Shown in pieces: positions 5,571-60,946 of a stretch of DNA of 64,000 nucleotides. Position numbers and translations under genes: made by a program. The stretch lies in NCBI GenBank assembly GCA_964234715.1, contig OZ174275.1; one strand, given 5' to 3'. Within the stretch, counting starts at the first letter, position 1; each line of letters opens with the position of its first letter. Source of the DNA: Podarcis melisellensis (lineage: Eukaryota). Below the pieces are notes generated by a model, which was not told the DNA's origin, made no database searches, and was given only the letters and a program-made list of their open reading frames with translations.

Positions 5571-29007
<23,437 letters not shown>

Positions 29008-29207
29008 NNNNNNNNNNNNNNNNNNNNNNNNNNNNNNNNNNNNNNNNNNNNNNNNNNNNNNNNNNNNNNNNNNNNNNNNNNNNNNNNNNNNNNNNNNNNN
29101 NNNNNNNNNNNNNNNNNNNNNNNNNNNNNNNNNNNNNNNNNNNNNNNNNNNNNNNNNNNNNNNNNNNNNNNNNNNNNNNNNNNNNNNNNNNNNNNNNNNN
29201 NNNNNNN
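29008..29207. other. Assembly gap (200 N)
   Basis: Run of N read directly. Confidence 1.
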
Positions 29208-29625: not shown

Positions 29626-32600
29626 GTTTCACACAAGGGGATTGTAAAACCGGGGAAGAGTAAAAGTTTGCACCGCATTTTGCAGCCTAGAATTCCTTAC
29701 CAGCGCATTCTGCACAATTTGCTAAAAGAAAACGGCCGGCAGCATGGCTTGAGGCATGCCCGGAGACTGAAGTGCTTATAATGTTTAAAAGACGCAGCAG
29801 CAGTTCATAGTGCAACCAAACGCGTGTCTCCCCACAAGTAAGCCCTACTGAATTCAGTAGGGGTTACTCCCAGAAAAGTAGACGTTCAGTTGAATTCAAT
29901 GGGGTTTACTTAGGAGTAGGCATACCTATAATTGCACTTTGTTCTTGAGCGGGGTAGAAGATGCAGCTTGACATTAGTACAGGTACAAACACGGATGCAA
30001 ACTCGGCCTGCTCATTTTCTTTCACACAACCTAAACATCTACTGCTAAATCACATACTGCTAAATTTGTTGACGTTGCACCCAAATTCACTGCCTGAACA
30101 TTATTTTCAATTAAAAAATGAGCTACAGTCAACTTACCACCCCTCCTGTTTCCAAAGCAGATGTAGGACAGACCAAATGAATAACATGCAAGAGGGCCTT
30201 CAGCAATGTATGTTGTGTGTGCATACTGACTGATCCTTGTTCAAGAATAAAAGTGTTTCATATACTTCAAAGCAGTATTGTCTCCGAAATGTTGGAACAG
30301 GAACCAACCCAGGGTTCGTGTTTCCTTTGGATATGAGACACAGTGGAGATTGTGGTGTCTTTATGATATATGGCTTGTTTGCAACCTGAGCCTACATTGA
30401 AAGGGTTCAAAGCATTAAGCTCCAAGCGGGTACTGTTTCTCTCATGGCAGTGGATCAAACAGCCAGATCCCACCAACTCATTCTTCCCCCAGCTTGCAAA
30501 AAAACAACTATCTTTCTCTCAAGCTCCGCTTTTTGTGTCTGCTAACTCTCAGCTCAGGGTGAGACTCCATGCATGGTTACATGTATGTTAAATACTTGTT
30601 ATGTTAAATACTTTGAATAAAGACTAATGGAGGTGCTAAGTATTATTATTATTATGTTTCAGTGAAGTTCGTGTTATAGGACAGACACAAATTAGAAAAC
30701 ATCTCTTTGAATCTGTAGTTCACTAAACATGAATTACACATCAAGTATTTCTTCACAAAGCATGCTGTTATCAGGTAAGAGTCTTACTTCACAACTGAAT
30801 AGCTGCTCTTTTTCCTGAGCTTACATGCAGTATTGGAAAAACTTTAAAAACTGTATTGAGGAAGAGAAAGGAAACAAGCAGGTGTGGGGAAGAGTTAAGC
30901 ACTCCATTCCTGTCAATCAGTTATTTCCTGCAATAGTTCCTGTGTCCCTGCATTTCACTTACAAAGAAAGCACACATGTTCTCAGCCCTGTTTCTTGATA
31001 ATGTGGTGTTCCACCCTCACATACAAAGGTATAGAATGGCTATGGCTATGTTCCTTAATTGTTTCCCACCACTATTTCCCCACCTTCAAACCACTTGAGG
31101 AACAGTTTGGCTCCTATTTTGTCACTAATATTGCACTGCCTATTGTTTCAGGAAGAGTGTGTGATAAAGTCAGAGTGGCAGCAGAGAAACTTTATATATT
31201 TACTCAGGTATATGAATTTTCAGGATTTGTGAAAAATGCCTCTTACTGGGATCAAAAACAAAGACGTTTGGCATGGAACAGAACTCCATTTGCTACAGAT
31301 CTAGCTAGCTTCCTCCACGGCTTCCCCCACGCTAGCTGTTCTGTATGAAATCGCTATGCTATGTGTGCCTCACTCACATTTTACAGGTAGTGGGTGTCTA
31401 CCCAAGACCATCACCCATTTGTAACCCTCTCAATGCTTGTTTCATCTCTTTACTTAACACAGAAGGTCTGGGATGTTGTTGGAGAAGAACAGATAGGTAG
31501 CACCATATTTACAGGAGCAGATATCCTTAGCAATACTTTTCAGGTTGTTGTTTTTTTCAGAGGCATGATTTTGACATGGGCAGTGAGGTGTTCATACCTC
31601 ATCAAGCACACAGTATAGCCATCCTTCCTAATTGTGGGCACTGTTTGATAAAGCCATAAAAAGGCTGTAAACACTTTTCCAGCCATAATTCAAAATATAT
31701 TAAAATATTAGCAAAGTACCGCTTAAATCAGGAATAGCCAATGTAAGGCGCTCTAGATTTTGTTGGGACTGCAGCTTCCCTCATACCTTACCAGCATGGC
31801 CAGTGGCCAGGGATGATGGGAGCTGCAGTCCCCAAAACACGCAAAAGGCCCCTGGATTGAATGAAAAGGTGTTACAGCACTATAAAACGAAGAGTAAAAA
31901 TATTTTTAAGCGTGTGTCATTCCTACTTAAACACTTCCAATTCAAAATGAATGAGGAAATACTTTTTTAAAAATTCATGGGCAGTAATGGGTAAACACAA
32001 ATAGATAAGCACTTGGTGGTAAATCAGGGTGGAGAGACTGCGGCCCTCCAAGTGTTTCTGGACTGCAATACAAGAATCACAGTCCATCATCATCTACTGT
32101 TGGAAATTGTAGTCCATCCATATCGGTAGGGCCATCACTGTGCTAAATAAATAATTCTTTAATAAATTCTCACCTAAAATTAATATAATTTTTAATTGCT
32201 GCTCAGGGAAGCTGAACCATCTCCACCTACGGCAGCTACATCATGCTTCCCGGTGTTGAGTGAACACAGCAGAACATAGAGAAAATGTGTGATATCCCTA
32301 ATTAGTATGGAAATGCAATTGCAATTCTGTTTGTAGAAGAGAGCAATGATTTATACACTCCTAGGAACCACCTGTTTGGAAACAGTCAATGTTTACATAA
32401 TTCAGTCCTCTGTTTCCAGTAGTAAAAGCGTTTTTTTCTGCCTATATGCTGTTCAGGATGTTCATTTCAGTGTGCTCAATTTGTCTCTGGTTTTGGAGGT
32501 GCTAATACTTATAGATTTGGTTCTTGGATCTGGTGCTAAACGTTATGTAGGATTACAACACATGCTTCAGCAGAGCCAGTTAATATTACAAAATCTCTTT

Positions 32601-32884
32601 TCACAAACTGCCATTGTAATGTGTTAAGCTCTAAGCCCTCTAAGGTTCAGGTTAAGTACTAAGGGAACTAATGAGCACTGGGTTTTAAGTTCTGTACCTT
32701 TGTGGGAATTTGACAGCTTACACAACCATTGGCTTTGATAGAATTGTAAATTCATACCTTCTTCTGAGAGAAGGCTGATAGGAAGATTGTTCTTAGGCAT
32801 ACAGTTTCTTGAAAATGTAATCTACAGTTTTGTTTTTTAAGCGCTTTTTAAGTATCCTATCTTTCCACACCACTTTCATTTTAG

Positions 32885-33001
32885 GAAATGCCAGCTCTTT
32901 AGTTGATGAATTTGTAGCAAACAACATGTCACTCTCTGCTAATTGCTTGGAAGATGATTTAATCAACATTGCTTTTGAAGTTTGCAACACTAAAGAAACA
33001 G
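32885..33001 (+). CDS. KASH5-like exon A (first EF-hand helix; candidate ATG 32926)
   Basis: ttttag| ... MSLSANCLEDDLINIAFEVCNTKET ... G|gtacgt; cf. KASH5 LEEQILNSTFEACDPQRTG. Confidence 0.82.
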
Positions 33002-36000
33002 GTACGTTTGATGCTTTTCTAGATCTTATTCCTATGAGCAATTGGGTGTGTAGAGTCAGTGAAAGTTTGTACATTTATTTGTAACCTTTCAATAAAACTT
33101 ATCCAACCTTTCCTTATAACGTTTGCAATGTAAAATCAATTAAAATCACTGCTTCTTCCCTCCCACCCTGCTTTTTAAATAACAGAAGGTGTACCTGCAT
33201 ATGCTTTTATAAAGTATTTGGAGGATATGACTGGGCATAGCCTTGAGAATGGTAAACTGCTCATGCTCTACAACATGCTGGACCCGAAAAGGCAAAATGT
33301 TCTTGTTGACAGAGAAACGTTTCATGAAACTATGAAAGAATGGATAGCCATATGCTGTCAAGATTGGTAAGTGAAAGTCCATTTTACTCTTCTCTGCTTT
33401 CCCATTGGCTTTAATTGAGATACAATTTGATATAATTTCTAAAACGCAGAAGCAGTGGCAACAAGGCTTCTATTTCTTGTACTCTGTTCTTCATTCTTGG
33501 TCTCTGACCGCTTTGGAGCAAAGCTGGAAGCCTGCATAGTCTACAGGGTATGTAATGGGACCAGAAATAGAATGGTAAAGCCATTACGTTGTTTCCCACT
33601 GCCCAAGCCCCTTTATGCACACACCTTAAGTAGTGGAGCTACATGTTATAAAGCACATGGGTTACTTAGATTCTCTTAAGATTTACTTTTAAACTGCAGT
33701 TACAAATGTACAGGATAATGTATTTGCATTGTAATTGTAATATGGGGGCAGAAAAATTGCCAAGGAGAATTGCTGAAGAGCACATCTGTTTCCTCAAAAA
33801 TGCCACAGTTTTGGCTAGTTTTCCTAAGATGGCTTTCTTCGAACTGGGCTCTGACTCCAGAATAAGTCTTAACTGTAAGGAAAAATAGCCTGGGATGGTG
33901 GCGGAGAGGGATGTTTGTATTTGGGAAAGTGGAAACTGATAAAAGAACTGTCAACCACTGCCTCCCTGTCTACAAGTTCTTTCCCGCAAATCACCTCAGT
34001 CTCTACATTCAGGTTAATCAGCAGGTTTGGGAAACTGTTTTATAAGCCATGGTTTCTGCTATGATATTTATTTCATTTATTGTCTTTTTCTTTAGTATAG
34101 TTTTTTCCCACCCACCCCCCGGTCTATTAAGGACACATTTTGCTTATGAAAGACACACATGGAGAGGGAGGCAATAGGGGTTGGATAGTGTATAGTACAA
34201 CCAGTGCTTTTTTGCACCTGGAGCTTAGTTCTGGCAACCCTCAGGTGGGTGCCATTGCCATTATAAGAGAACCTCTTTTTCTAGATTAATAGCACTGAGT
34301 ACAACTCTGAGGTAGAATTCTTTGATTCTGTTTTGTTCCCTGCTGTTGACTTTCAGACTCATGTACTGTATGATTCCCAAGCACTCAGGTATGAAAAATT
34401 GGATTGATTGTTGCCTAGGGAGACAAACAGAGGAGTAATTTTATAGATAACATGGGCATTCTGTCTCTCCATATATTACCTCTCTGTTCTGCTGGATATA
34501 AATAAGGATGAGGCTGAAGTCAAATGTTCTCCTCTTAATTTTTTGACCTCACTATTAAGTTGACTGGGAAATGCATCCCTAATATAGTGCTGACAACTAA
34601 AACTGGAAATTCTTACTGTCAATTTCTGCTTAGCCTTTATTGCTAGCTACTTGTGGAGAAGATCTCAAGCACTTAGAGACAGTTTGAAGTGCAATCCCTA
34701 GATCATTGTTAATACAAATAAGATTTTGATCAAAATATTACTTCACAATATTTTATCACATTAATTCTAGGGTTTCTCTGTGAATTCTATAGCTTATGCT
34801 TAATATAATGAAGTTGTTTGCATAAATTCAGTAAAAGAATTTTGCAAGTTCTTGAAAAATCAACCTTACCATTACCAAATGTCTTCAGACAGTTTAAGAA
34901 CAGCTTTTTTTTTTAACCTAGCATGTCAGAAACAGAAGTTGACAAGTTCACTACTACCACTAACAGAAATCTGCATTGCAATGGTGAGTAGTTGGATGGC
35001 TTACTTCTCCAGTTATGCATTATTCTTCACAGATGTGGGTGCTATTTCTGTTAAAAGCAGAATCAATCATGACTTATTTCACTGACTACTATGAATGCAG
35101 TGTTTGTGTCAGGTCCTGTGGTACCTCGGGTTACAGATGCTTCAGGTTACAGACTCCGCTAACCCAGAAATAGTACCTTGGGTTAAGAACTTTGCTTCAG
35201 AATGAGAACAGAAATCGTGTGGTAGCGGTGCGGCGGCAGCAGGAGGCCCCATTAGCTAAAGTGGTACCTCAGGTTAAGAACAGTTTCAGGTTAAGAACGG
35301 ACCTCCAGAACAAATTAAGTTCTTAACCCGAGGTACCACTGTATCTGGAACTGGCCTTGTGGGCTGTCCTGGGAAATTTTTAATCAAATTATCCAGGAGA
35401 AGCTGTAAGTCTATGCTTAATAAAGGACAATTGCCACTACTACTGTCATTAACTTGAAGGGCATTACCCAGCACAATTTTGGTCTAGTGAATGTGGATAG
35501 AATGGGGTGTGGTGGACAGAATGTTGAATGAAATCTGGATTCAGTTCCTCACTAAGTCTTACTCAGTGGCCTAATCTACTTCTGAGGATTATTGTGAGGT
35601 TTAAATGGGATAACATCAAAGTGCACCTTCTGTTTTTCATGCGATGATTGTATTGAATTTTTATTTAAAGAAAATTAGATATGCTTAAGCTCAGCTGCCT
35701 CAAATATGCCTAACACTTGCATTACGGCCAACACCTACACATTCATTTTATGTGCCTACTTCTCACATGTTTGTGTTAGAGTTTTCCCAAAGCCTAGCTT
35801 GAAACAACCAATGTCGCCAACACAATGTCGATACGTATTGCAAAACAACATTTAATGCAACACCCTTTCCCCCCTTGAACAGATATGATGTCCTTCTTAT
35901 CTGATGAAGATGCTGACATATATGAAGGAAGACCTGGAGATTCTGAAATGGACATTTCCAAGTAATGTTTATGAATATGAAAGTTGAAGGAATTCAGCTG

Positions 36001-39000
36001 TGTACATTGCGTGGTGTTGCTGTTTACACTGCAAGAGGGGCAACACCATTGCCTCTTTCAACGTAGTGGGCATAACTCAATGCCCTCGTATTAGATTTTA
36101 TCAGCTATGATGGGTGGGGTCAAAAGGACACATTGTTGATCTTACCACCACAATCCTGTCCACGTCCTTGGCTGAAACAACTGAATCCTACTAGGTATAA
36201 TTTGATGGTGGTCCAGAGACCTCCAATGGACCTGAACTAACTGTGGCATCACGTTTAGCACAGATCTGGGTGATTTTGCCCATAAAGTGGTTCACAAATC
36301 TCTTACAGCAGGCTACTGACTGGTGTTTTTTTGGGGTGGGGGGTGGGGTTGGTCAATGATAGCACTCTGGTCTGGACCAGCTGGTTTACCACTCTAAACA
36401 GTGAATTGCTGGGCAATTTACTGAGGATGTTACAGAGACAGAGTATTAGACCTCTGCAGGGAGGTTGAGTCATAGCCAATCCGAACCGCACTAGTGAATG
36501 ATATATCCATGACGGTGGGACAATATTCACCTACTGATTTTTCTCAGTGTGCTCTGTAGCAAAAGCCTAGGACATTATCTGTGGTATGCATTGGGTGCAT
36601 CATGTATTGAGACAGCTCCATGGTTGCCATGACTGCCAGGAAGTCCTGAAGTGGCCCACATAGGGCAGCATCAACATAGATACTGATGACCCTTAGAATT
36701 AATGTCTTGGGATTCTCCAACATTACCCCTCCACCATCTCAGTGAGGGAAGTTGTAGGGCTGCAAGGCAGATGGTACTCCATCTAGAACCCTGTTCTGTG
36801 TCTGGCTCCCAGCACCAAGTACAAACTATCACACCCAGGTCCCAGATGGTCTGGCCTTCTGGTGAGAATGATGGGATTCTTATGGATCACTGCCATGCTC
36901 CCTCCCTATCCCTCCAACCTTGATTGGCATGGCACTGAATAACCAGGCATGCAAAGCTAGGTAAAGTCAGCCCTACCTCCCCAGGTCTCTGTAATACACC
37001 AGATTGGGCACCTCACCCATGATCAAATAATGGATGAGAATTGTTTTATTAGACTGACCTGGCATTAAGTAATACTGGATGGGAGGGCAGGCCAGCATGC
37101 TACCCAAGTCTGTGTTGGGGGAAGGCTGAGCAAGGCAACAGGTGTCAAGCATCTACTCCATACTTTTCTATGACAATATTGCCTATTCCCTGTTCCATTC
37201 CTCCCACACCCCAGGTCCTTAGCGATAGCTGCTTCCTGAATCTTCCTCACCTTCTGTCTCTGCTAAAGGCACATAATGCTGTTGCTGTTTTTTTCCTCTG
37301 CCCCAAGGCCACTGTTGAACATCAGTGGGAGAGCTCAGTATCATAGTACCACCCACCGAGCATCCTGCGTATGTACCCTCTAATGGTTTCCATGTTCTCA
37401 CCAGATTGCCATTCCCCAGTAGTCTATCTCTCACCAAGAGGCTGGGTTAGGCACATACACATCTGACAATTTTTTTTTCCTGGCTCTTGCCCAGGAATCA
37501 ATCCAATCAGTAATCAAACATTTTGCAGGGTTAATGCAAAGGCTTGGACAAGCAAGTATTAGCATGATTATTCCTCAGGTTCTGTTCATGTCATCCCAGC
37601 TAGGATGGGCACACTGGATCAGGGTGGGTGGATATTAAGTACACATTAGATTAGCACTTAATGACTTGTAAACCTGCCAAAGGTTATAAACTGAGGAAAA
37701 AGTGTCTTAATACTGAAGGCCTACATTTTAATTTATTAAGGGCTTTCGACTTAAACAGCAGCGTTGAAGACTTAAAATACATGAATCAGAAAATGACTGC
37801 GCAATTACTGGGAATGCAGAAAGTAATGGAGTTGTCTGAGGAATCCTATCTGCAATTGACAGATGATATTGTAGAGCTGAGAGACAGACTGGCAAGGTAT
37901 TATTTTCTAAGTGTGTGTGTATATATACTCTCTCCTTTTCTTATTTTTGGAAGCACTGTTTGAAAGCATGTTATTATGACTGTGCTGCCAGTGTACAAAA
38001 AGGTCAACTCACAGATCCAATATCTTGAGTGGATCGCTTTAAGAGAAGTATTTAGATAGATTGGTGGGTGGGTAAGAAACAGGACCAACCTGACATAGCC
38101 TATTCTTCTGATCGGTACTCACATGTAGTTTAAAAGCCAACAAGGCTAGCCATTTTCCAAAGCAGTGCCTTTTCTGGCTTTATAAGTAGGCAGTATTAAT
38201 GTTCTATTTAGTTTGCAACCTGTTCCTATGCATGTTTAATAGGAGGTTTCTCCGAGTAGGTTCTGTGGGACTTTCCAGGCAAGTGACCACATTGGGAATT
38301 TTGTAAAGATGCTGTGGGGTGTGTAGCATAATACCAAATGGATGCTTTGGGAGTAAGGCTGCCACATCTAAAGGAGCAAAAAAATTAAAAAGAACACAAC
38401 CACAAAATGCTGCAGCCATGCTCCTCTCCCATTATCCCTTCCTCAGTGGTAGAAAAATACACCTGTATCAGCTGCCACTGTGCTCGCTCACAGAGAGAAG
38501 TTATTTTCACTTCTCCTCTGTTCAGAACAGATGTGAGGCTGGGTGTCCAATCCTGGCATCCAATGAAATGTGGGCATATTTGAAGGGCATTCAGGACAGT
38601 AGAGACTGAGCTAGTGTAAACAGGAACTGAGTGGGAACCTTATTGAGGCTTTTTGAAGCAATGTTTACCAAGACCTTCTGTGGGTGCTATACTGGCGGGA
38701 CAACCCTGATGTAACTTGTTGATTCATCTTTTTTTTTACTGCTTATGTGCCTTGTCCAGCTTAAGAGCTTTGTAAAGACTGTACTGAAATGTATATAACC
38801 TTTTTTTTAAGCATGCAGAAGCCTTTAGAAAACTACAAAAACATATGGCGTGAACTTGAAGACACCAAGAATAAAATGGCAAGCTTGCATGAAGAGAATG
38901 GTGTGATCCGTAAATGTGTCGCAAGTCTGGTATTTAACAGCTCATTTTTTACTGAGGTTGCTGCTTTGAGAGAGATAATGAATTCATTAGTAGTTGACAT

Positions 39001-42000
39001 TTTGACCCTAATATGTTCAGAACTTTATTTTATTTTTAAATGGTCTTGCCAATAATCTGAACATCATCAAGTATAAATTCAAAAAACGCTATTTTTCAAA
39101 CTCATGCATTGTTCACATGCACTTTGATCCTGATATCTGGAACTGGCTGCCAATGACTCCTGCTAGTTGTATGTTTTGCAGTAAACCCAAGTTTGCTGCC
39201 ATGTAATGAGTGAAATGACTGTGGGTTTGAATGTAGGGTGCTTCAAATGATTTGATGGTAATCTGGCCTTTTACCCACTGTCCATGAGCATCCATGTACT
39301 GGTGTTTTTATGGGTACTTTATTGTGCTTGAGAGCCAAGGCTTAAGAAACCAGATTGCAGAAAGGCCTTTGGACAAGCACGAGACCCTTACCATATAATT
39401 TATGGTGCCTTCAAACCCAGAAGCCAGCCATTGTGAGTGGCATTTTGAGCCCCTTACAATTGAAGCCAAGTGTTGTTCATTCTGGCTTACCCATTGTGCT
39501 TATACAACCACCAGACCAGCTGTCGGGGGCTACAGGGGCAGCTTCTGCTGTGGATAAAGTAAATGGGTCCAGACCCTTGCTTCAAGGCCACCAAGAGGGC
39601 AAATCTTAATACAGTGCCTAGCAAATTGTAGCATGCAGCTGTGAGACGTCACCGTTGCGGGTGGAGTGTGTGTGTCCTATGCTTCAGTGTGTACACACAG
39701 CCTGTGTAGCACTTTAATATACCTCTCACACACTCATGAAAACAGGGATTTTCTAATGAAACCAGTGGTAATAACAAAAGGGCTACCTTTTCTCAACCAG
39801 CCCTGTCCATGATTGGCTACATTGTCATTTTTCCAGCCTTAAAATGAATAGTGCAGACAGACCCATCCATTCCTTACCTCCACATAAGCTTTGTGTAAGC
39901 AAATGCTCAATAAGTAGTTTGTCTGGAAGGGCCCTGAGTCTCTCCACCCCTAATGCATTTTCATTCATTTTCATTTCTTAAAACAGAAAGAAAGCGTGAA
40001 GTCCCTTGGTATAAAACTTGTTTCACTAGAGGAGGTAAGTTTTTTTTTTGGTAGCCATAAAATTTGCCCATGGGGCATATGTACAAAGCTCCTTGCATCG
40101 AGTCAGACAAATGGTCTATCTAGCTTGCCATTGTCTGCAGTGACTGGTAGCAGCTCTCCAGGTTTCTGACAGAGGTCTTTCACTGGGAGATGCCAGGGAT
40201 TGAAGCAGATACTCTGCCACAAATCTATGACACTTCTGAACAAACATCTAATATTAAAGGGGGTGGGGACTAAAGGGAGGACTACGATTTTGTTTATTGA
40301 GTATGCTATAATCTTGTTTCAAACATCTCTTTTGCCTGGTGTTTGATTTTTATCAACATATTGCTTTTGTCTTGTTGGATCAATATCTCATATTTGTTTT
40401 GAAGACTACTCACATCTTCACTTCTTTTCAGTTGGTGATTACAGTGCTAGTGAGTTAACCACCTAGGGCAGGGGTCTGCAACCTTTAAGACAAAAAGAGC
40501 CACTTGGACCCGTTTCCGAAGGGAAAAAAAACTGGGAGCCGCAAAACTCGTCATTATAAAAATAACTTTTTTGTCACTTTTTTATTATTTCTTTGTTTGA
40601 CCCCTCAGAATTACTCCTCCTCATAGAAATAAACGTTAAATTAACAAGTTACCTTTTTGTGTGTGTGTGTTCTTCACTCCCCTTCAAAACAGTGACCAGC
40701 GTACATGCCCCCTTTCAATGCAGTGATCAGCGTACATGCCCCTTACAATGTAGCGGGCGGGCGGGAAGGTGACTTCGGGACGGTGCATGACTAACGCACG
40801 CACCGCCCCATGCGACGTCACAGCCAGTACAGCGCCCGCCACAGTGGGGAGTGTCGGGGTGCACAATGCGCCTCCTCCCCTCGCTAGTATCCGCCCCAGA
40901 GCCGCGGCAAAGGTGTAAAAGAGCCACATGCGGCTCCGGAGCCGCGGGTTGCAGACCCCTGACCTAGGGGAAAAAACTGGTTGGCCTGAAGAGATTATCT
41001 TAACCATGCTGCTGATTTAAGTGTTTCTTTTTCAGATGCCTTCTTTGTAAATTCTGTAGTCTGCAGCTGAATGAAATTTAATCTGCCATAAATAAACAAT
41101 ACTTCTAGAGTATGCAATATAACATGAACCATCTCATGGGGGATTGCAACTGAATTCTCTGTTAGAAACAAGAAATCCATTTACATGTGTCTGCATCCTT
41201 TGTATTGTGAAGAATATACACATTAACATATAATCGTTTTGGTAATTTTCACTAATCTATCTCTTTGGCATTAGAATGCAAAAGCCCATGAAGAAAGAAA
41301 TACTTCTGTGTTTGAAGCATTATTGTTTCTGCATTCAAGGGAACACTTTGAGAATTTTTTACAGGAAATAGTCTCTCAGAAGGATAGCATGAGCATGTTT
41401 CAAGCCCTGATGGAAGAAATTGTAAGTAGTTCTATTACTGAATGTTTATTCTGGTGTTTCATTTGTGGAGACTGTCAAGCAGTAAAAATGTTCAAACTCC
41501 CACCTCCTCTGCCTAACTAGGCTCAAATCTTTAATTTCTCATTCACCTCTTTTCTTAAAGGGCAGAATAATAAAGGGATTATAAATATAGAACAGGCTTC
41601 CTCAAACTCGGCCCTCCAGATGTTTTGAGACTACAGTTCACATCATCCCTGACCACTGGTCCTGCTAGCTAGGGATCATGGGAGTTGTAGGCCAAAAACA
41701 TCTGGAGCGCCAAGTTTGAGAAAGCCTGATATAGAATGTGTGTATGTCACAGTGGACTTCCAGGTAGGAGTTTATTGTAGGATTGGTGTTTTTCATGGAC
41801 GTAGGTTTTTCACAGCATTCACTCAACATCATTGACATCAAAATGTCAATTTATTCATTCCTCCTGCCCTTTAATCTGGATTTGCACTTCCTATGGAAAA
41901 TCTTGTTACCAAGAATCTATTTGCAATATCTGAACAAACTATTTGCAGTATGAAGCCCCATCTGGAAGCAACCACGGTGATGTCTGTATTGAATCAAGAT

Positions 42001-45000
42001 TTGCCTTGAATGTAAAGCAAACAAATACATTATATTTGTACAAAAATAATAAATGTGAACTAGATAATGTGTCAGAAGAGGGCAGTATTCAATTATACAA
42101 TCAGAGTAGAAGCTAGTTAAGTAAAAGGTATGTGCCTTTTTGGTTATTTTCTAAGACTTTAACCTTATGGGATTGTAAAGTCTAATTTTATGACCTGTAG
42201 TTCTGATTAAACCTAGGCTGCACTTGGTCTTACAGTTATTCATGAGTCTTGTTACAGCTGATAAATTATAATCACAGGACTGAGGACTCTATAATATGTT
42301 TCAACACCTGAAAGCATCTTTTGTTCTGTAGTTTTCCCTCTTCAAACATCTATATCCTTATCTTTCTAGGAGCTGAAACAGAAAATGGATCACTCACTAG
42401 TAACTGTATTACAGACATTGGCCAACTTATGCCCATTCATTGAAACTTGGAACAAAGTCGTAAAAAGATTAGAAACTTTTCTGGAAGGGCCACAACTTTG
42501 GATGAAATCACCTTGGTATGTTTTGTTTTTCCTTAAATAAAGAGGCAGCAATCTTAAGCATACTTAACTTGGAAGTAAATCCTTCTGACATTAAATGGAC
42601 TTGCTTCAGGGTAACATAGATGAGCCTTGGCTGCCAGATTTTTGTACAGGAGCAAACAATGACACAATCAACAAGAGTTCAGCTGCAAAGTGAAAAAAAC
42701 ATTTTTGAGGCCAAATTGTGAGTGGGATGTTTGTCATGAGCTGACTGTAAATTGTCTTTTTGTGTTGGAAAATCCAATTGTGTGACTCCACCCGAAATGA
42801 AGTATTGGGGGGGGGGGGGAATCCTTAAATCTCTCATGTTAATCTCCACTCCCTCTTTGATTGTCAAAGCTTGAACTTTTGTTCTGTCCTACATACATAT
42901 CTAGCAGACAACCAGATGTCACCTAGTAGACAGTTTTTAGAAGGCAAGTGGCAGGAGGCAGTTGTGGATGCCAAGGATAATATCACTTGGGTGTGCCACA
43001 AGGTTGCCAAAATTGCTCAGGTGGAGATTTGTAGGGTTGCTGTTGTTGACATCTGCCTGTCTCAAGGGAAAATGGAGTGCGCCTCTGGGGGTGAAGTCAA
43101 TTTGCTACATTAGCAGCACCAAAGTGACCTCCCTGGGATGCAAGTCTGAGCAGTGTGTTTGGAGGTCCCCTCTGGAATGGTAAAATCTGGGACATTTGAA
43201 AGGCACAGGAACTAAGCTTCCTTCAGAACCAGAAGAGCACCTCAGGATGATTTGCAAGGGGGGGGGGACACAGGGCTAAAGTTAACTAAAGAGAATCCCT
43301 GAATGAGGGCAAGATTGGTAATTCTCTTGGGGGATTGTGGGACTTATGGTAAGAAAATCATCCCGGAAGCTGTAAAAAGGGAGGGTCATCAGAAGTAGTT
43401 AGGGTTTCATCCATTTAATCCTAGCCATTTCTACCAAGAAGTAAGTCCTCCTGAATTCAATGGGGCTTCCTGCTAGGTAAGCAGTTAGGATTGTAGCCCT
43501 AGTTGTTCATTTTGAACAGGAAGTCACATATTTACATTATATTGCATTTATAGAACATAAAAAATAAATGGAAAAACTATATCTAATGTAAGTTAGCCTG
43601 AGTGGAAGCCAGAGGGTTTCGGGTGGTTGTTTTTTTAGTGTTTGAAGGCTATGATTTAGCCAAAATGGCATTTAACTCACTCCAGTTTCTCTAAGGCTTA
43701 GATAAATGTCAGCTATTTATAACTCCTAAATTTCAAAATAAAACATAATACTGTTTTAAAGATTTCAAGGCACATCTTTGCTTAGCGGTGTTTGTTTCTT
43801 TTTTAAAAAAAATAATTTAACCTTGTGGTACCTAACAAAAATAGGAAGGGGAAAGGACACTAACAATAGTGAAAAGATAAATCCTGCCATCCGGGAACAT
43901 CTAATCTCATGTATACATTTCACTTTCTTTAGTGGGATTGTGTTATTATCTGTGTTATGGTTTAGTTAGTGTTTAGAGAGTCTTGCATCTTTGTTTAGCG
44001 CTGGGCAAAATAAAATGGGAAAGTGAATCCTTGTTCTAAATATAACCAGGAGGCGAGTTAATAAATCAAGGTTGAATGGAGTGCACAGCCCACAGTATGA
44101 AAAGGCCATGTTTTTAAATGAGGAATTCCTTCTGTGCAAAGAATAGTCATGTGCCCATTGGAATTCCCACAGCACTAAGACAAGGCAACTCTCTTGGCTG
44201 GAAAACATAATGGCAATATTGGTTCAGAAGCCAATGGTATCTCAACTGAATATGGGTAGCTGGCAGGTTTTATTAAATATACATAAGGAAACAACAACAA
44301 CAAAAATCCTAATCTTTATTGGCCCCCCTTTATTTTATAGCCTTAATGTTGAACTTCATGAGGAGGAGGAATTGGGTGAAACAAATGAACAATTGGAACA
44401 AAGCACACTTGAAGCAGAGTTTCAAGCTTCCACAAACTATATGATGAATTGTGACAGTTGCTGCTTTGAGAACGCGAACATCAGAACTTCCAAAAAGTAC
44501 CATGGAGCCAATCTAAGCAAAAAAGCTTTGCAAAATGTAAATGCAATCACTTTCAGCAGCCAAACGTTAACACAAACTCCAGAAAAAGACCAAATATTGG
44601 TACAATGTCAGATCTGGAAAAAATTGTTAGGAGGGAAAAAATGGTGGAATCCAGAAGGAAGGCTGGAAGCCATTTTGGAACTTTCTAAGACACTGGCAAA
44701 TGACAAGAATACTGTGTTAGATGAAAAAAAAGAATCATGTAAAGAGGAACATAAAATTCAGCCAGAACAGAAGGGAAACCTAGCTGCAGCTATAAAACTG
44801 AAAGAACTGGTTCTTAGAATTCCCAAAGATCTCTGTGAAGGTGTATCAGAAAGCAATGTGACAATTCTATACGCCCAACAGATGATAAAAGCACTTCAGC
44901 TGTGGATTTCTGAAGGGGAAGGAAACTTTCTGTTTCAGGAAAACTCAAAAGAAACAAAGGAGAATTTTCAAATGGATGAAAGGATGCCAAACTTCACTCA

Positions 45001-47408
45001 GGTAGTGTATGGAATGCAAAACTTAATATAATTTGAAGCTCAATGAGCATTATAATAGCTCATTTCTGTTGCCTTCATAGGAAGATTTCCCTGCTTCAGT
45101 GCACTTTATTTTCCAAGCTTCAGTTAACGAGCAGCATGCATGCTGTACTCATTTAACTTATTTAAGATTTTAAAAATCTGTACCCATAGACTATCTATAA
45201 TAGCTAAACAATTTTATTAAAATAGGTGACTACATGAGGGTCCTGAAAGCAACTCTGAAGCTATTTTGAGCACATAGAAGGCAAAAGCAGCCAAAGCGTG
45301 GGAATAATATCCAGTGTTAATCAGAGTAGACCTGCTACTACTACTACTAATAATTTAATTATTTATACCCCCAACATTTGAGAGCCAAAACACATGCACA
45401 TATGAGCACAGCTTCATGGGATAGAGCTGGATAGCTCAGTTGGTTACAGCATGGTGCTGATAATGCCAAGCTTGCAGGTTTGATCCTGGGACAACTGCAT
45501 ATTCCTGTATTGTAGGGAGTTGGACTAGATGATCCTCAGGGGTCCCCTCCAAATATACAATTCTATGATCAATAGGAGTTCAGAAGATTATGGGAGAGAG
45601 GGACCAAAAAGGTCATGTGTGTTGTGTGAAGACATCCCCACCACATCTCTAATGGGAACAACACAGTGATTTGACCTTGCTGTGTTTTAAGCTGCTAATG
45701 TGAACATACAGTTTACTTCTTTTCAGACACTATATGAAAAGAGAAACAGGGATCAAGCTGAAGCATGCCCAGCCTCCTCACATTAATTGTAGGGGTAGAG
45801 AGCACTGTCTACACATTTAGGAGTTCTCTGCAGGGTTTGGGCAGGAAGGGGTTGATGGAGCCCAAAGGATTTGTTTAAACTTCCTTCATTGTCCATGGTA
45901 AAGCGTGCCAGTTGGAGATTACTCAGGAGGGCTGCACAGAGCTAATGCTTGGAAGATGGCACCAACATGCCTCTTGCAGATTAATATTACAGACATTTTA
46001 GATAGGGAGCATTTCTTTTTCATGGTTTTGGTTGGGCTTCTTTTCATAGTCAGAGCATATGTTTTCTCATCTCTACAGGGATAATGCAGCTTTTAATATT
46101 CAGAACTAAAATATTGTGTTTATTCAGTCTGCAGAACCAACAAAGTGTGAGGACTTCAATCACAGCAGTGACAGCATAACATTTGTTGGCATGAAAAATG
46201 AGCTACACCATTGTTTTTCAATGGCTCATCAATGTTCAGCACATCAAGAAGACAACAATAAAATGAGTGGTAGGAGAAAACATTCCCTAGAAAACGCTAA
46301 ACAGAGTGCTGTTTCCTCTCTCCCACTATGCAATTTGGCTAATAAACCTGGAAGTGTGTTATGAAATTGACTTTAATTATTCAGCAAACATTGTATCCTA
46401 TATACCAAACAGAAATAAATGACATTTCTCCTTAGGGTTTCTCCAGACCTGCTATTCAGCATTCGTCTTGATGTGCTTGCTTAGAGCTTAAGTGTTAGTC
46501 TGTGTCTTTACTGAGCATTCATTCTGATTTGCTTATGGGATAGATATACAACAATGAGCATCCGTCCTGATACGTTTGCAGTGAGGGTACACGTGTTCCC
46601 ATTGATAATTTGTTCTTCCCAGACTTTTCAGTGAATGTCCCTGTCACTTTCCTAACCGCAAAAGAGGGGATTTATTGTGCTAGGGTGACAGAGCATTTCA
46701 ATCCTCTTTAATTGCACCAACCTTTATTTCCAATTTGTTCCTGAATCCCTCCTGCAAAATAGTGAGATTTGCCCCATTAATTTTTTTTGCCAGCAGCACA
46801 CAGTTAAGACTGTCACTCGGTTTCATGTTTTTTCTCCTGCCAACCGGACGATCTCACCCTCTCATTACTTTAACTGATGTCGTTATGTTTTAATTTACCC
46901 ATCCCAACTACTCAGGTATTTGCCATTGGACTTGCGGGCAACTGCCAGCTTCCTATCCTCCCCCCACCTTTAAAAGTCTATCAGATATAGAGGATTCAAA
47001 GTTGCAGTTTTTGTTAGCAAATTTATTTGTATGCAGCATCTCCATGAGCATCATTCCTGATTATTTAAATTTCAGTTGTTGAGTAGGAAGATAAGTTAAA
47101 CTGTTGCTAGGTATAATCAGACTGAATTGCCTGGAGTTGTTCTGATGGGTTATGGTTGCCAGGCTATTGTTGCCTGAGATAGAGAAAAACATATGCCACA
47201 TCTATACGCTTGAATGAGGATGTTCAAGGCAAGGATGGCACTGTTTCTGCAAAGTTTCATTTTTTCCCTAGCATTTCTTGTGTGGTTCAACTGTATCATT
47301 TTAATAAGTATCTAATAGTACTTCTCTGTTCTCTTTGTACGAGCAGATGAAAAATACTCTGAAATGGAAAAACCTGCATTGGTAATGAAAAACAGAAAAC
47401 CCAGCAAG
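32926..47408 (+). CDS. KASH5/long-LRMP-like EF-hand plus coiled-coil protein (predicted 12-exon model, at least 626 codons); separate gene or upstream module of IRAG1
   Basis: join(32926-33001,33186-33366,34922-34983,35883-35961,37741-37896,38812-38929,39987-40034,41275-41421,42370-42515,44341-45001,46128-46269,47347-47408); all AG/GT, phases compatible, no stops; N-terminal half aligns by eye with recalled KASH5. Confidence 0.8.
33186..33366 (+). CDS. KASH5-like exon B (EF-hand pair core)
   Basis: GVPAYAFIKYLEDMTGHSLENGKLLMLYNMLDPKRQNVLVDRETFHETMKEWIAICCQD, donor gtaagt; cf. KASH5 YLEAVTG...NSLDP...VDLDTFLVVMRDWIAAC. Confidence 0.9.
34922..34983 (+). CDS. KASH5-like exon C (linker)
   Basis: Poly-T acceptor aacctag|, MSETEVDKFTTTTNRNLHCN, donor gtgagt; supplies the required phase 2 to 1 bridge. 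Confidence 0.72.
35116..35341. mobile_element. Tc1/mariner (Tigger-like) MITE
   Basis: TIRs ctgtggtacctcgggtta / taacccgaggtaccactg followed by TA; internal ggttaagaac repeats. Confidence 0.85.
35883..35961 (+). CDS. KASH5-like exon D (acidic linker)
   Basis: ccccttgaacag|, MMSFLSDEDADIYEGRPGDSEMDIS, |gtaatg; phase 1 to 2. Confidence 0.7.
37741..37896 (+). CDS. KASH5-like exon E (coiled-coil start)
   Basis: AFDLNSSVEDLKYMNQKMTAQLLGMQKVMELSEESYLQLTDDIVELRDRLA; cf. KASH5 ADLLSSLEDLELSNRRL...QRSMETAEE...EEILALRKQL. Confidence 0.87.
38812..38929 (+). CDS. KASH5-like exon F (coiled coil)
   Basis: MQKPLENYKNIWRELEDTKNKMASLHEENGVIRKCVASL; cf. KASH5 QQALQFAKAMDEELEDLKTLARSLEEQN. Confidence 0.83.
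39987..40034 (+). CDS. KASH5-like exon G (coiled coil)
   Basis: aaacag| KESVKSLGIKLVSLEE |gtaagt; phase 0-0; cf. KASH5 EKEQQHLVAEMETLQEE. Confidence 0.8.
40469..40961. mobile_element. Non-autonomous hAT (Charlie-like) transposon
   Basis: Perfect 15-bp TIRs caggggtctgcaacc / ggttgcagacccctg; perfect 8-bp TSD ACCTAGGG at 40461-40468 and 40962-40969. Confidence 0.92.
41275..41421 (+). CDS. KASH5-like exon H
   Basis: ttag| NAKAHEERNTSVFEALLFLHSREHFENFLQEIVSQKDSMSMFQALMEEI |gtaagt; cf. KASH5 NGKLLAER. Confidence 0.7.
41593..41728. mobile_element. Palindromic hAT-type MITE
   Basis: TIRs caggcttcctcaaact / agtttgagaaagcctg; perfect 8-bp TSD ATATAGAA. Confidence 0.9.
42370..42515 (+). CDS. KASH5-like exon I
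   Basis: tctttctag| ELKQKMDHSLVTVLQTLANLCPFIETWNKVVKRLETFLEGPQLWMKSP |gtatgt; phase 0 to 2. Confidence 0.68.
44341..45001 (+). CDS. KASH5-like exon J (large 661-nt exon, E/K-rich)
   Basis: Inside the longest ORF of the window (44210-45031); ttttatag| LNVELHEEEE...ERMPNFTQ |gtagtg; phase 2 to 0. Confidence 0.72.
45423..45569 (+). mobile_element. tRNA-derived SINE with CR1-like 3' tail
   Basis: gatagctcagttggttacagcatggtgctgataatgccaag...ggactagatgatcctcaggggtcccctccaa...attctatgat. Confidence 0.8.
46128..46364 (+). CDS. KASH5-like exon K (internal donor after 46269, or terminal with TGA at 46362-46364)
   Basis: tattcag| SAEPTKCEDFNHSSDS... in phase 0; donor gtagga at 46270; alternatively reads to a stop with AATAAA at 46414-46419. 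Confidence 0.5.
   Translation, partial: SAEPTKCEDFNHSSDSITFVGMKNELHHCFSMAHQCSAHQEDNNKMSGRRKHSLENAKQSAVSSLPLCNLANKPGSVL
47347..47408 (+). CDS. KASH5-like exon L
   Basis: Pyrimidine tract then gagcag|, EKYSEMEKPALVMKNRKPSK, AAG|gtaagg; phase 1 to 0. Confidence 0.55.
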
Positions 47409-47953
47409 GTAAGGAAATGAGATTATAAGAACCTTTGGTATTTTATATTTGAAATTAAGCTATATTCATGTAGGCAATTTTTCATGTAGGAGTTGTTTCC
47501 TCTAATGGAACAACCTGCATTTCCAGGCAAACTGGGGTTACAGCATCATACCTCATTCATTTCCTGGTGTAGTGGTTTTTAATTTCTTGGTATCGATAGT
47601 GAACAGGTATTCGTTCATTCCTAGACTGAAACTAATTTCTACAAAGCAATAACAACTATATTCATGACTTTCGTAGTGGGATCTTGAACTACATCATGAT
47701 AAGCAAGCAGGTCTGGCTCTAGTAAGTAGAGACTGCCTGGCAACCCTATTGTGCTCTGTGGGTAAAGCTGGGTACAGATGGAATAAACTGGAATAAAGTA
47801 ACAGATTCTCCAAGCTTTATTGCCTTGATAGGTTTTTGTTGGCAATGGGTGGTTTGCAGAAATTACAAGTGTATAGGTATTGACAAAATGGGAATATGTG
47901 TCTTTGGAAAAGAAAATATAATAGAACTCTTGGTGCTTGGGAACCATTTCAAT

Positions 47954-48089
47954 CATGGGCGTAGCCAGGATTTTTGTTGGGGGACGCAGGCATTTTGGGG
48001 GGGCAGAATCTCAGCTATGTATTTTTATTGATTTTTATTGGTTTAGGTGGCCAGCTGCCCCTCCCTGCCCCCCCCCGGCTATGCCCATG
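47954..48089. mobile_element. hAT-type MITE
   Basis: TIRs catgggcgtagcc / ggctatgcccatg; degenerate 8-bp TSD atttcaat / attgcaac. Confidence 0.75.
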
Positions 48090-50971
48090 ATTGCAACGCT
48101 CTAAAGGAACATGAGGTGGACACCTGACTGAAGCTTAAGGACATGTGGGCCTAGTCAGGGACTAGATGGGAAACCACCTGAGATATGTGCTTTGTATGTT
48201 ACCTTGGGATTTATAATGGAAAAAAGTGAGATGTAAAATACCAACTTTCCAAATCTCAAGGGAAAGAATTTTGCAGAGGAGAATAAGAAAACTGAAATAA
48301 CTTTGGAAAGTTGCATGTAAGTATGAAGGTTGAGGTGGAACTGGAAGCAGCAGTCCAAGATAGTTCCTAGGAGTAAGGAGTTGTGCCAGGAAATAGGGGT
48401 TGAGGGATAAAACCACAAATAAGGATTAGAAAACCAGCAAAGAATACAAAATGCACTAAAGCTCAGGAAGACCATGCTGCTTGGCCAAGGCCCAACTAGA
48501 ACAGGGAGGCAACTTTTGCTCCTTCCTATCCAGGAAGAGATCATGGCCAGCCTGGGTGGGTGGAGTCAACTCAGGGCTTGAGAGTATTTCATTGTCTAAA
48601 TAAATGCTGCAACCTGCAGTTTGAGGACTTATTAGGCCAGCCACACACAGATCCAAGGACTTACATGTTTCCAGGTTCAAATTTAACATTATGCTAAATG
48701 TGTAGCTAGCGACTACACCCGATATTTTTCTTTATTTAAATACAGGCATGGTGGGGTGATTTTTCCATGGGGGCCACAGATGTGGGATGGGGAGGTTTGA
48801 TCTTTCTATCGCAGTCACAATATGGACAAGAATCCCCCATCCCAAGCTACAAAAATTAGGCAAATGAACTAGAACCTTTCTTAATACGTCTGATGCTCAT
48901 GCTTGAGGTGGGATTGGGACTGCAGCTAGGGAAGGAAGGATTAGATTTAAATACTCCTCATGCTGTGGACCCCATGAAAGTGAGCCTCCTTCCCCGGCAC
49001 CTGCAGTTTAACTAAGAAAACTCCCAAATATAGCTAGCCACACATTGAACATAACATAGAGTATCCTGAGTTGCATTAGCTGGAGAGAAGGAGAGATGGA
49101 AATGGATGCAATTCTGATTTAAGTACAGTTATGTTTTTAGGATCGTCCCCCGTCCCCTCCTTCATCTAGACTAAATTGTTGCATGCCACATTATTTTGTT
49201 ATAGTATATTCAGGACACTGGGCAGAACCCTGTCAGTGGAAGCCCTGCGTAAAGACTCCCACTTGTACAACAGGGCATTCCCACCCCCCATATCCTCCCC
49301 CCCAGCCTATCCCTGCACCTCCCAAAATTGGCTCTGGTAGTTCAGGAGAACCTCCAGAATAGTTTGCAGGGGGAGAGGACGTGGGATCATTCCATCTGGC
49401 AAGCTGATATGCCTGTGCAGACAGAATGTTTGTCACAGTGCAGTGTTGAATTCCATCCACTAAATGTTGCCATTTTAATGTAGGATTATAGTATGATGCA
49501 GTTTCATCAGCCTAGTTTGTTATACTCCCTTACTTGTTGTCTACTTTGAAACAAATACAGTACTGTAATTCTAATTCAGTTACTCTGCTCTTATAAAATC
49601 TGACTGCAGAATTAACAAATAGTTGAACCAATTTCCAAATGATCCTTATTAAATAGCTTTTACTAATGTAAAAGCATTCAGGACTCCTCAAAATTGCATT
49701 TCATACAGTTTTTAAAAGATAGTTGTCATTCCCCTTATTTTACTGGATTCTTGATCTGTGTGGAATAACTTTTTGTAGTTTAACAGTTTTGGTTTTTGAT
49801 GGCATGTCTCTCTTCCTTGGGGAGTAAATTCTCTTGCTAATGAACGGAGAATAGTGTTCCCCAGGCCTCTCTTGACTTTTGACTAAGAATAACATCTGTC
49901 ACTACCAAGAAGCTGTGTGTAAAATTAGAATTTCTCAGGGCAGATTGAGAACAAGATTTGTTTATGCCTTGTGCTTTTAAAATAGGATGACGTTGCAGAG
50001 TTTGCTTTATTGTTAGTGTGTGTGCTCTAGGCATCAATTGGAGAGAATGAGTATCTTCTACACCACCTATGGAAAAGAGGTTTCATTTATGGCCGCAAAA
50101 ACTTTCAAATATAATACCTTGTAAGAACATTACTTGATTTCTTGGTGAGAAAATTTCTTTGGAATAAAATAACTCAAATGTATCTATAAGAACTAGGCTA
50201 AGACCTGTATGAAATGAAATATTGCCCAAGAACATCTTTGAAACCTTATGCATGGCAAAAGCAGTACTGTATGTGACAAATACTTTATCTAGTCTTGGGG
50301 TACCCATGGCCAAAATGTACATGGCCAGACACTCTTCACTGTGTGGTAGAACCACTGTGTGGTTTTCATACCACATTCATTATCAGTTGAAGCTGCAGTT
50401 GTGCACAGCAAGGCAGAAGCTTCAGTGGAATGTTGCGGAGGTAGTATTGTCTGCAGAAGTCCATATCTTCCTTTCCTAGGTAGTATACATTTCACAACAA
50501 AGGGCTTGGGATGTTTGATTTTTTTTTTTAACTGAGTCTAGATACTTCTCTAAATCTATTTATTTACAGTATGTATATTCCACCTTTTAGATGGACAATG
50601 GGCTTCCAAGTGAAAGGCTGCTGGTCCCTTATTAAGGCTCTTGGGGTGGAGGAGTGATGATAGAAAATAAAAACTGCTTCTAGTGTTATAACTAAGCAAA
50701 CTTGCATGTGAAAATACTTCAATTTGCTCTTGGCACATTCTATCATTTGTTTTGAAGGTATCATGGAGAGTTTGGTGCATAGTTTTATGAAACTGGACAT
50801 CCCCTTTTGTCTTTAGTTTTTCTGTACTGGTGGGGTTTGATTCTGTTGATCAAGAATGGCAAAATGTCCCCCCTCCATGTCAAGCACTTTCCCAGTCTAT
50901 GTCTAAGCGAATTCAGATGAATAGACTACCTAAGGGCAAGCAGATGTGGTCTCTGGCAGCATGGTTGTTTG

Positions 50972-60844: not shown

Positions 60845-60946
60845 TAAAAGCTCCCAGAGCGAGCAGAAGGGAGAGAGAGAGAAAGAGAGAGAGAGAGAGG
60901 GAAGCTTCCCCGAAGGGGGAAAACAAGAGGAATAGCTCAGTTTTAG
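60841..60946 (+). CDS. IRAG1: IRAG1 (MRVI1) first coding exon; remainder of gene beyond the window
   Basis: MVKAPRASRRERERKREREREASPKGENKRNSSVL then G|gtaagt; matches the recalled mammalian isoform N-terminus MVKAPQSEERLARGGKENNSVLD; divergent orientation to CTR9 fits known synteny. Confidence 0.8.
60870..60899. repeat. (GA)n microsatellite inside the IRAG1 first coding exon
   Basis: gagagagagagaaagagagagagagagag read directly. Confidence 0.9.

Follow-up and report, generated by a model that had tools for sequence, protein, structure and literature searches.

An EF-hand and coiled-coil module beside CTR9 in Podarcis melisellensis: probable 5′ exons of IRAG1 and a third relative of the KASH5 head

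Introduction

Which gene do the exons that stand head-to-head with CTR9 in lizards belong to? In a 64,000-nucleotide (nt) stretch of the Podarcis melisellensis genome (contig OZ174275.1 of assembly GCA_964234715.1; the whole stretch is called the window here), CTR9 occupies the minus strand, and 12 exons coding for an EF-hand pair and a coiled coil of the KASH5 type follow on the plus strand. The gene next to them on that strand is presumably IRAG1 (mrvi1). An initial annotation had described the exons as a gene of their own, located between CTR9 and IRAG1. Here, we regard them as an expressed and constrained module at the 5′ end of the IRAG1 (mrvi1) locus, most likely spliced to IRAG1 exons, a reading that we hold with reasonable rather than high confidence. 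The module is old and is the IRAG1-linked third paralogue of the head carried by KASH5 and by zebrafish long Lrmp (Futile cycle, Fue).

In the literature, KASH5 and zebrafish long Lrmp are the sole carriers of this dynein-binding head, and IRAG1 is described purely as a regulator of the inositol trisphosphate (IP3) receptor and cyclic GMP (cGMP)-dependent protein kinase 1-beta (PKG1-beta) (PMC3787381, PMC10298018). The EF-hands of KASH5 bind helix 1 of the dynein light intermediate chain (LIC) without calcium dependence (PMC10071310), and Fue binds dynein and is required for pronuclear congression (PMC3787381, PMC10071310). Horn et al. (2013) considered Kash5 and Lrmp alone and proposed a single duplication accompanied by the loss of exons at the 5′ or 3′ end. 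No paper linking MRVI1/IRAG1 with an EF-hand/coil module was found in our literature search. The sequence family is already present in databases as automated models; it is the link to MRVI1/IRAG1 that is absent from the literature found.

Results

Exon structure of the module

The exon chain was rebuilt from splice sites, two lizard loci (Sceloporus and Phrynosoma) and read contigs. Homology searches were run exon by exon, and the chain as a whole was checked for phase and stops only. It consists of 12 plus-strand exons (A to L) between 32926 and 47408, with AG/GT at all internal boundaries, end phases of 1,2,1,2,2,0,0,0,2,0,1,0 and zero stops in codons or split codons. The end phases are identical to those of the initial annotation, and the peptide of exons A and B reads as quoted there. 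Counted from the ATG, with exon H beginning at 41365, its length is 596 codons; the 626 codons originally given are obtained if exon H begins at the alternative acceptor 41275, which adds 30 codons. The original start at 32885 proved to be only an AG-preceded position, and the conserved ATG lies at 32926. This ATG was taken as the translation start because Sceloporus carries an in-frame stop immediately 5′ of the matching position. The features are as follows.

Conserved upstream block and 5′ untranslated region (UTR) of exon A, 32506..32925, plus strand: found by blastn against two phrynosomatids.
Exon A, 32926..33001, plus strand: ATG, first EF-hand helix and loop (MSLSANCLEDDLINIAFEVCNTKET); ATG kept in Sceloporus and Phrynosoma.
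Exon B, 33186..33366, plus strand: remainder of the EF-hand pair; EF-hand_9 match on the exon alone.
Exon C, 34922..34983, plus strand: short linker, inside the blastn block 34821-35026.
Exon D, 35883..35961, plus strand: acidic linker (MMSFLSDEDADIYEG...); tblastn matches in both phrynosomatids.
Exon E, 37741..37896, plus strand: beginning of the KASH5-type coiled coil; KASH_CCD match.
Exon F, 38812..38929, plus strand: continuation of the coiled coil (RELEDTK...LHEEN); phase-0 donor at 38929.
Exon G, 39987..40034, plus strand: 16 codons (KESVKSLGIKLVSLEE); splice sites cag/../gtaagt.
Exon H, 41365..41421, plus strand: 19 codons; donor gtaagt; candidate acceptors at 41365, 41353 and 41275.
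Exon I, 42370..42515, plus strand: conserved helical segment (ELKQKMDHSLVTVLQTLANL...); joint 42515/44341 in four runs.
Exon J, 44341..45001, plus strand: 220 codons, fast-evolving middle exon; joined to exons I and K in contigs of four runs.
Exon K, 46128..46269, plus strand: joints 45001/46128 and 46269/47347 in four runs.
Exon L, 47347..47408, plus strand: last exon seen; end phase 0, donor AAG/gtaagg.

Exon C is the sole AG..GT interval in the correct phase that fits Sceloporus residues 86-106 (ISESEYERYRTMSNGNIQYN). The nucleotide identity of exon D is 82% to Sceloporus and 78% to Phrynosoma, and its predicted donor is unlike that of the Sceloporus model. At exon F, similarity to Sceloporus stops at 38932-38934, i.e., at the donor at 38929, and the exon G peptide fits KKGVESVTRLISLEE in the Phrynosoma protein and locus. 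Within and beyond exon H, positions 41392-41442 are 86% identical to Phrynosoma, with a weak collinear peptide match in Sceloporus, and conservation favours the short form (acceptor 41365) as the probable one. Exon I gave a weak collinear match to a whale-shark homologue at 555-590.

At the 3′ end, exon L has no stop codon, and reading on past its donor would meet a stop after 3 codons. No membrane anchor was detected in the 12 exons, the top 19-residue Kyte-Doolittle mean being 1.03, i.e., not transmembrane-like. At the 5′ end, blastn similarity extended over 32506-33420 for Sceloporus (66%) and over 32506-33425 for Phrynosoma (70%), continuing across exons A and B; the part at 32539-32753 has stops in all frames. 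The region 32506..32925 is therefore described here as a likely promoter or transcription start region of the module's own, together with the exon A 5′ UTR. Such an apparent own upstream region at 32.5-32.9 kb would suit an independent "KASH5-like" gene with terminal exons of its own past 48.3 kb, either soluble or with its own anchor, and unjoined to IRAG1. That 0/12 exons carry a stop or a hydrophobic anchor argues against such a gene.

EF-hand pair and coiled coil

Both Pfam families named in the initial annotation were recovered on single exons. Exon B alone matched EF-hand_9 (PF14658) at 19.9 bits (E 0.001; profile positions 15-66 of 66), and the open reading frame (ORF) of exon E alone matched KASH_CCD (PF14662) at 31.8 bits (E 1.7e-7; profile positions 2-52). 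The Pfam gathering scores are 37 bits for EF-hand_9 and 43.3 bits for KASH_CCD, and the Sceloporus orthologue lies above both (41.8 and 47.8 bits, respectively). Exon A alone gave no EF-hand_9 match, the domain being split across exons A and B; exon F alone gave no KASH_CCD match, and exons I to L gave no Pfam match. In the Sceloporus orthologue, KASH_CCD spans positions 7-86 of 191, with exon F aligned to ~86. The recognisable coil, from exons E to H, amounts to ~90-125 residues.

When 24 homologous EF-hand pairs were aligned, exon A corresponded to the first half of EF-hand_9 and retained its invariant E and C, and exons A and B together retained 13/13 nearly invariant EF-hand residues. They are also identical at 16 of the 19 columns of >=80% conservation, including a 97%-conserved valine column. 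Their EF-hand loops are without canonical calcium ligands; the loops of KASH5 are likewise non-canonical for calcium (PMC10071310). An AlphaFold model of the first 95 residues of the Sceloporus orthologue showed, with confidence, an EF-hand pair, helix-loop-helix twice, with a predicted local distance difference test (pLDDT) score of 82. The best PDB neighbours of this model were EF-hand lobes, with weak scores (template modelling [TM] score 0.5-0.6, E ~0.01-0.1). Queried by sequence with exon B, the Sceloporus protein and crocodile KASH5, PDB returned no relevant solved structure, and the structure prediction for exon J was unusable (pLDDT 35).

Homologues, trees and synteny

A search with exon B among 1.84 billion representatives yielded 105 homologues at E<=0.001. 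Nothing in this search exceeded 74% identity, so the library holds no close-relative model. Searches with all exons as rows, with exon J and with a 294-amino-acid (aa) stretch around exon J returned no protein from the lizard's own family, under a length window that may hide longer ones. Phrynosomatid lizards were the nearest relatives of the window in every search. Automated models had been anticipated by the initial annotation and were indeed present: the named homologues include "protein KASH5-like" of Sceloporus undulatus (XP_042318079.1, 239 aa), a partial Phrynosoma protein and "protein KASH5-like" of Latimeria (XP_005989770.2, 368 aa). The Sceloporus protein is the orthologue by synteny and tree and spans exons A to F at 64-72% amino-acid identity. 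Models named "mrvi1" were found in Hypanus sabinus (XP_059832226.1, 2013 aa), Hoplias malabaricus (XP_066504120.1, 1730 aa) and Oryzias latipes (X1-X4, ~1520 aa; X1, 1526 aa), and long IRAG2 homologues in sawfish, guppy and bats.

In the module tree (80 rows, 335 columns), squamates, the Latimeria KASH5-like protein and the long mrvi1 proteins of gar, sturgeon and teleosts formed a 26-row clade (Shimodaira-Hasegawa approximate likelihood ratio test [SH-aLRT] 97). This clade was set apart from a group of long IRAG2 and KASH5. The KASH5 clade holds Hemicordylus capensis X8, a Gekko kuhli model, Pelodiscus, Crocodylus, Tyto, Lissotriton and skate KASH5, and Callorhinchus IRAG2 was placed in the IRAG2 clade. 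In a tree of the EF-hand alone, the chondrichthyan CTR9-adjacent genes joined the mrvi1 clade with a support of 89, and a 116-aa relative fell near the squamates. Because the KASH5 and IRAG2 clades have chondrichthyan members of their own, the leftover chondrichthyan clade is taken as the third paralogue. The head-to-head arrangement with CTR9 recurs in the window, Sceloporus, Phrynosoma, Hemitrygon and Hoplias. Trees and synteny thus bear out the proposal, made in the initial annotation, of a third paralogue of the KASH5/long Lrmp module at the CTR9-IRAG1 locus.

The NCBI name "protein KASH5-like" for the Sceloporus and Latimeria models would also be explained if KASH5 itself had been translocated to the side of CTR9. 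This explanation is already contradicted: squamates have their own KASH5 (Hemicordylus capensis X8, Gekko kuhli) in another well-supported clade, Latimeria carries KASH5 as well as KASH5-like, ray and characin mrvi1 also adjoin CTR9, and the KASH tail is absent from the 12 exons. We consider it extremely improbable, in agreement with the original view that the module is something other than the KASH5 ortholog.

The fish models bear on the relation of the module to IRAG1. EF-hand_9, KASH_CCD and MRVI1 occur within one model in Hypanus, Hoplias and Pristis, and the Oryzias model also fuses the module to IRAG1. Fish long mrvi1 (Hypanus, Hoplias and Oryzias) and the lizard chain have in common the clade of the module, the head-to-head position with CTR9 and the order of EF-hand_9 followed by KASH_CCD. 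The fish models include the MRVI1 domain, whereas the lizard exons would be linked to IRAG1 exons by splicing that we presume; exons J to L have no detectable similarity to the fish long mrvi1 proteins. Searching the window by tblastn with ray and teleost IRAG1/long mrvi1 recovered exons A, B and E only. These fish models are automated and without described function.

The separate models, namely XP_042318079.1 of Sceloporus, the 368-aa protein of Latimeria and the pair annotated at the corresponding locus of Hemitrygon (a module gene of 908 aa and a separate IRAG1 of 905 aa), speak for an independent gene. Against this, the Sceloporus model reads into the intron after exon F and is therefore cut off rather than complete: it ends at 239 aa past exon F, whereas the window chain continues for six further exons, four of which are confirmed in contigs. 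In the compared locus, this passage across the exon F donor into the intron, followed by a stop, lies at Sceloporus 17433-17609. In addition, a single model unites the module with IRAG1 in Hypanus, which is close to Hemitrygon, and likewise in Hoplias and Oryzias. The initial annotation's separate gene between CTR9 and IRAG1 is hard to maintain when its ray, characin and medaka orthologues form the 5′ half of one mrvi1/IRAG1 model.

Names in this family are inconsistent. Module proteins of the mrvi1 type from shark, ray, sturgeon and loach are called IRAG2, IRAG2-like or LRMP, and Pristis "IRAG2 X8" is near-identical to Hypanus "mrvi1" in the module. Long IRAG2 models with EF-hand_9, KASH_CCD and MRVI1 were seen in bats (Myotis, 1432 aa) and birds (~1455-1466 aa). 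Because these bat and bird models carry it, a KASH5-like head on IRAG2 is not restricted to fishes, which differs from the view of Horn et al. (2013), based on human and mouse.

Transcripts and splicing

Four sequencing runs (X1 to X4; two organisms, two studies) matched the interval 42300-48299; they were classed as RNA by guess, and no run recorded as RNA matches it. They contain 5-8% of its words, i.e., the exons. The GT..AG joints 42515/44341, 45001/46128 and 46269/47347 (I/J, J/K and K/L) were present in contigs of all four runs at a depth of 5-30. Single contigs of 1535, 2311 and 2424 nt cover exons I-J-K-L and reach 126, 902 and 1044 nt upstream. The longest, from run X4, extends 1044 nt 5′ of exon I; coding sequence back to the ATG accounts for 777 nt of this, leaving ~267 nt. 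The contigs differ from the window by ~3% and are therefore from related species, two in number; one indel is an in-frame 3-nt AGA insertion in exon J. Of the junctions proposed in the initial annotation, I/J, J/K and K/L, joining the last four exons, are thus seen as spliced joints in RNA-like data from these two species.

Contigs of X2, X3 and X4 cover 47346-47409 and then run on for 394, 394 and 365 nt, respectively, in sequence not found in 42300-48299. Because the contigs continue past the donor in sequence absent from that interval, transcripts splice out of exon L. Together with the open end of exon L and the absent anchor, this onward splicing from 47408 tells against a separate gene complete within the 12 exons. 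On the other side, the 365-394 nt after exon L are not assigned to IRAG1, as an independent gene would have it. Considering all of the above, we judge an independent gene rather unlikely.

Conservation and constraint

The coding sequence is under constraint in close and distant comparisons. Among the close relatives, the contig differences listed comprise 11 synonymous and 15 nonsynonymous changes on 192 and 813 sites, a ratio of nonsynonymous to synonymous rates (dN/dS) of ~0.3. The compared Sceloporus locus stops before exon J and the Phrynosoma locus before exon L. Within the former, blastn matches were limited to exons A to F, H and I (H as a weak peptide match) and a few non-coding blocks, and dN/dS was 0.40 over 235 codons. 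Within the latter, exons A to K were all collinear, and dN/dS was 0.47 over 483 codons, with a minimum of 0.19 in exon B, zero stops and in-frame gaps only. Amino-acid identity to the two phrynosomatids was 69-73% for exon E and 66-72% for exon I. Exon J was 46% identical to Phrynosoma over 214 residues, with zero stops and in-frame gaps only, and exon K was 50% identical, also with in-frame gaps. Introns were mostly unalignable against the two phrynosomatids, and exons were conserved.

These values bear on a further explanation, i.e., that the exons are a decaying relic of an ancestral long IRAG1, transcribed without a functional protein. The moderate level of constraint (dN/dS 0.4-0.5, with exons D and K at 0.8-0.9) would be consistent with decay, as would the second half of the KASH5-type coil, which is not recognisable, and the position of squamates as the only tetrapods in the clade among the 105 representative matches. 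Conversely, the window has 596 open codons, the 483 aligned codons of Phrynosoma are stop-free across a deep squamate split, and close relatives show an in-frame 3-nt indel and a synonymous excess. The exon B value and the precise splicing in four runs also argue against decay. A relic, i.e., the pseudogene named as an alternative in the initial annotation, is thus improbable.

Two intronic blocks were also conserved. Before exon J, a 450-nt non-coding block (43669-44121) matches Sceloporus at 78% and Phrynosoma at 75% identity, which is as high as, or above, the level of most exons. Stops interrupt every frame of this block, Rfam gave no match to it, and it may be an enhancer or splicing element. 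The second block, 125 nt long (47027-47151) and 200 nt before exon L, shares 80% identity with Phrynosoma and likewise has no open frame; it falls within 47005-47214, which a collinear contig of X1 covers at low depth.

Other features of the window

CTR9 lies on the minus strand at ~5.5-29.4 kb, as traced by ORFs, and one of its exons matched human CTR9 chains in PDB at E ~1e-37. A run of N at ~29000-29200 falls at the CTR9 5′ end/promoter region. Between exons J and K, a high-copy repeat (45300-45700, within 45.2-45.8 kb) reached contig depths in the thousands in four runs, with many loose ends, some of which carry a tRNA-like GGTTCGATCC box; it looks like a short interspersed element (SINE). 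ARAGORN found no tRNA in the 45.2-45.8 kb repeat, and Rfam gave no match over 29-64 kb. ORF fragments of a non-long-terminal-repeat (non-LTR) retrotransposon were present on the plus strand at 51048-52333 (RVT_1 E 3e-8, weak zf-RVT). A GA-rich segment at 60874-60946 has a strong donor, TTTTAG/gtaagt, at 60946, and one of its frames stays open, beginning with an ATG at ~60842; it was considered as an IRAG1 exon and could not be confirmed.

Discussion

The lizard module can be compared with two described systems. KASH5 (CCDC155), a meiotic dynein activating adaptor, is alike in the non-canonical EF-hand pair, the invariant residues and the type of coiled coil. It differs in clade and locus, and the lizard sequence covers only some half of the KASH_CCD profile; the 12 lizard exons show neither a KASH5-type transmembrane/KASH tail nor a conserved Spindly motif. 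Zebrafish Lrmp/Futile cycle is alike in principle, being a tail-anchored member of the IRAG family that is extended at its N-terminus by a KASH5-like part. It is another paralogue, the long IRAG2 clade being separate from the lizard module in both trees.

A long IRAG1 isoform is favoured for the lizard exons because they have no stop or anchor, transcripts splice past exon L, fish models fuse the module to MRVI1, and IRAG1 is expected next on the strand. Several observations weigh against this explanation. No IRAG1 coding exon was identified in 47.4-64 kb by tblastn with fish IRAG1 or with human IRAG1 motifs; the 365-394 nt beyond exon L lie outside 42300-48299, and the junction of exon L with IRAG1 is a presumed one. 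The RNA nature of the runs is a guess only, though their content is spliced. NCBI treats the module as a gene in its own right both in Sceloporus (239 aa) and in Hemitrygon, where the 908-aa module gene and IRAG1 are two genes, and constraint is moderate, with dN/dS of ~0.8-0.9 for exons D and K. The squamate module matches only the first ~90 of 191 KASH_CCD positions, and the conserved columns past ~90 are covered by no window exon; the initial annotation's description of a KASH5-like EF-hand plus coiled-coil module is otherwise supported. A coil of this length may not suffice for a full activating adaptor. A Spindly-like LFQE in exon J, the sole L[FA]xE candidate, was rejected, as it reads WLEE in Phrynosoma. 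The EF-hand dynein activating adaptors (KASH5, CRACR2a, Rab11-FIP3 and ninein) have a long coil and a Spindly motif, neither of which was recognised in the lizard module, and the short coil and absent conserved motif call for caution on full activating-adaptor function.

If the exons are joined to IRAG1, the product would be a long isoform as in fishes, with EF-hand_9, KASH_CCD, the MRVI1 domain and a tail anchor. The EF-hand pair would bind helix 1 of dynein LIC independently of calcium, a putative activity suggested by homology to KASH5 and Fue (PMC10071310, PMC3787381), and the coiled coil would form a dimer. The IRAG1 half would anchor the protein in the endoplasmic reticulum (ER) or outer nuclear membrane and bind the IP3 receptor and PKG1-beta. 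The combined outcome would be the tethering of ER/outer nuclear membranes to dynein. That squamates keep a functional long IRAG1 of this kind, with a KASH5-type dynein-binding head on an IP3-receptor/PKG-binding tail-anchored body, is a tentative proposal, somewhat short of an even chance.

The locus thus holds a third ancient copy of the head, linked to IRAG1 in lineages ranging from sharks to lizards and expressed and constrained in squamates. For annotation, the squamate "KASH5-like" model is truncated, and within the clade several chondrichthyan and fish genes bear the name IRAG2 or LRMP. If the head is joined to IRAG1 and binds dynein, IRAG1 would have begun as a membrane-anchored motor adaptor, and the family history of Horn et al. 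(2013) would need a third branch. IRAG1 would then be a third, undescribed membrane-anchored dynein adaptor beside KASH5 and Fue/long IRAG2. A single Fue-like ancestor would have given rise to all three, and mammals would have lost the head or left it unused. In that case, the protein could couple the positioning of the ER or nuclear envelope in germ cells or zygotes to calcium/cGMP signalling.

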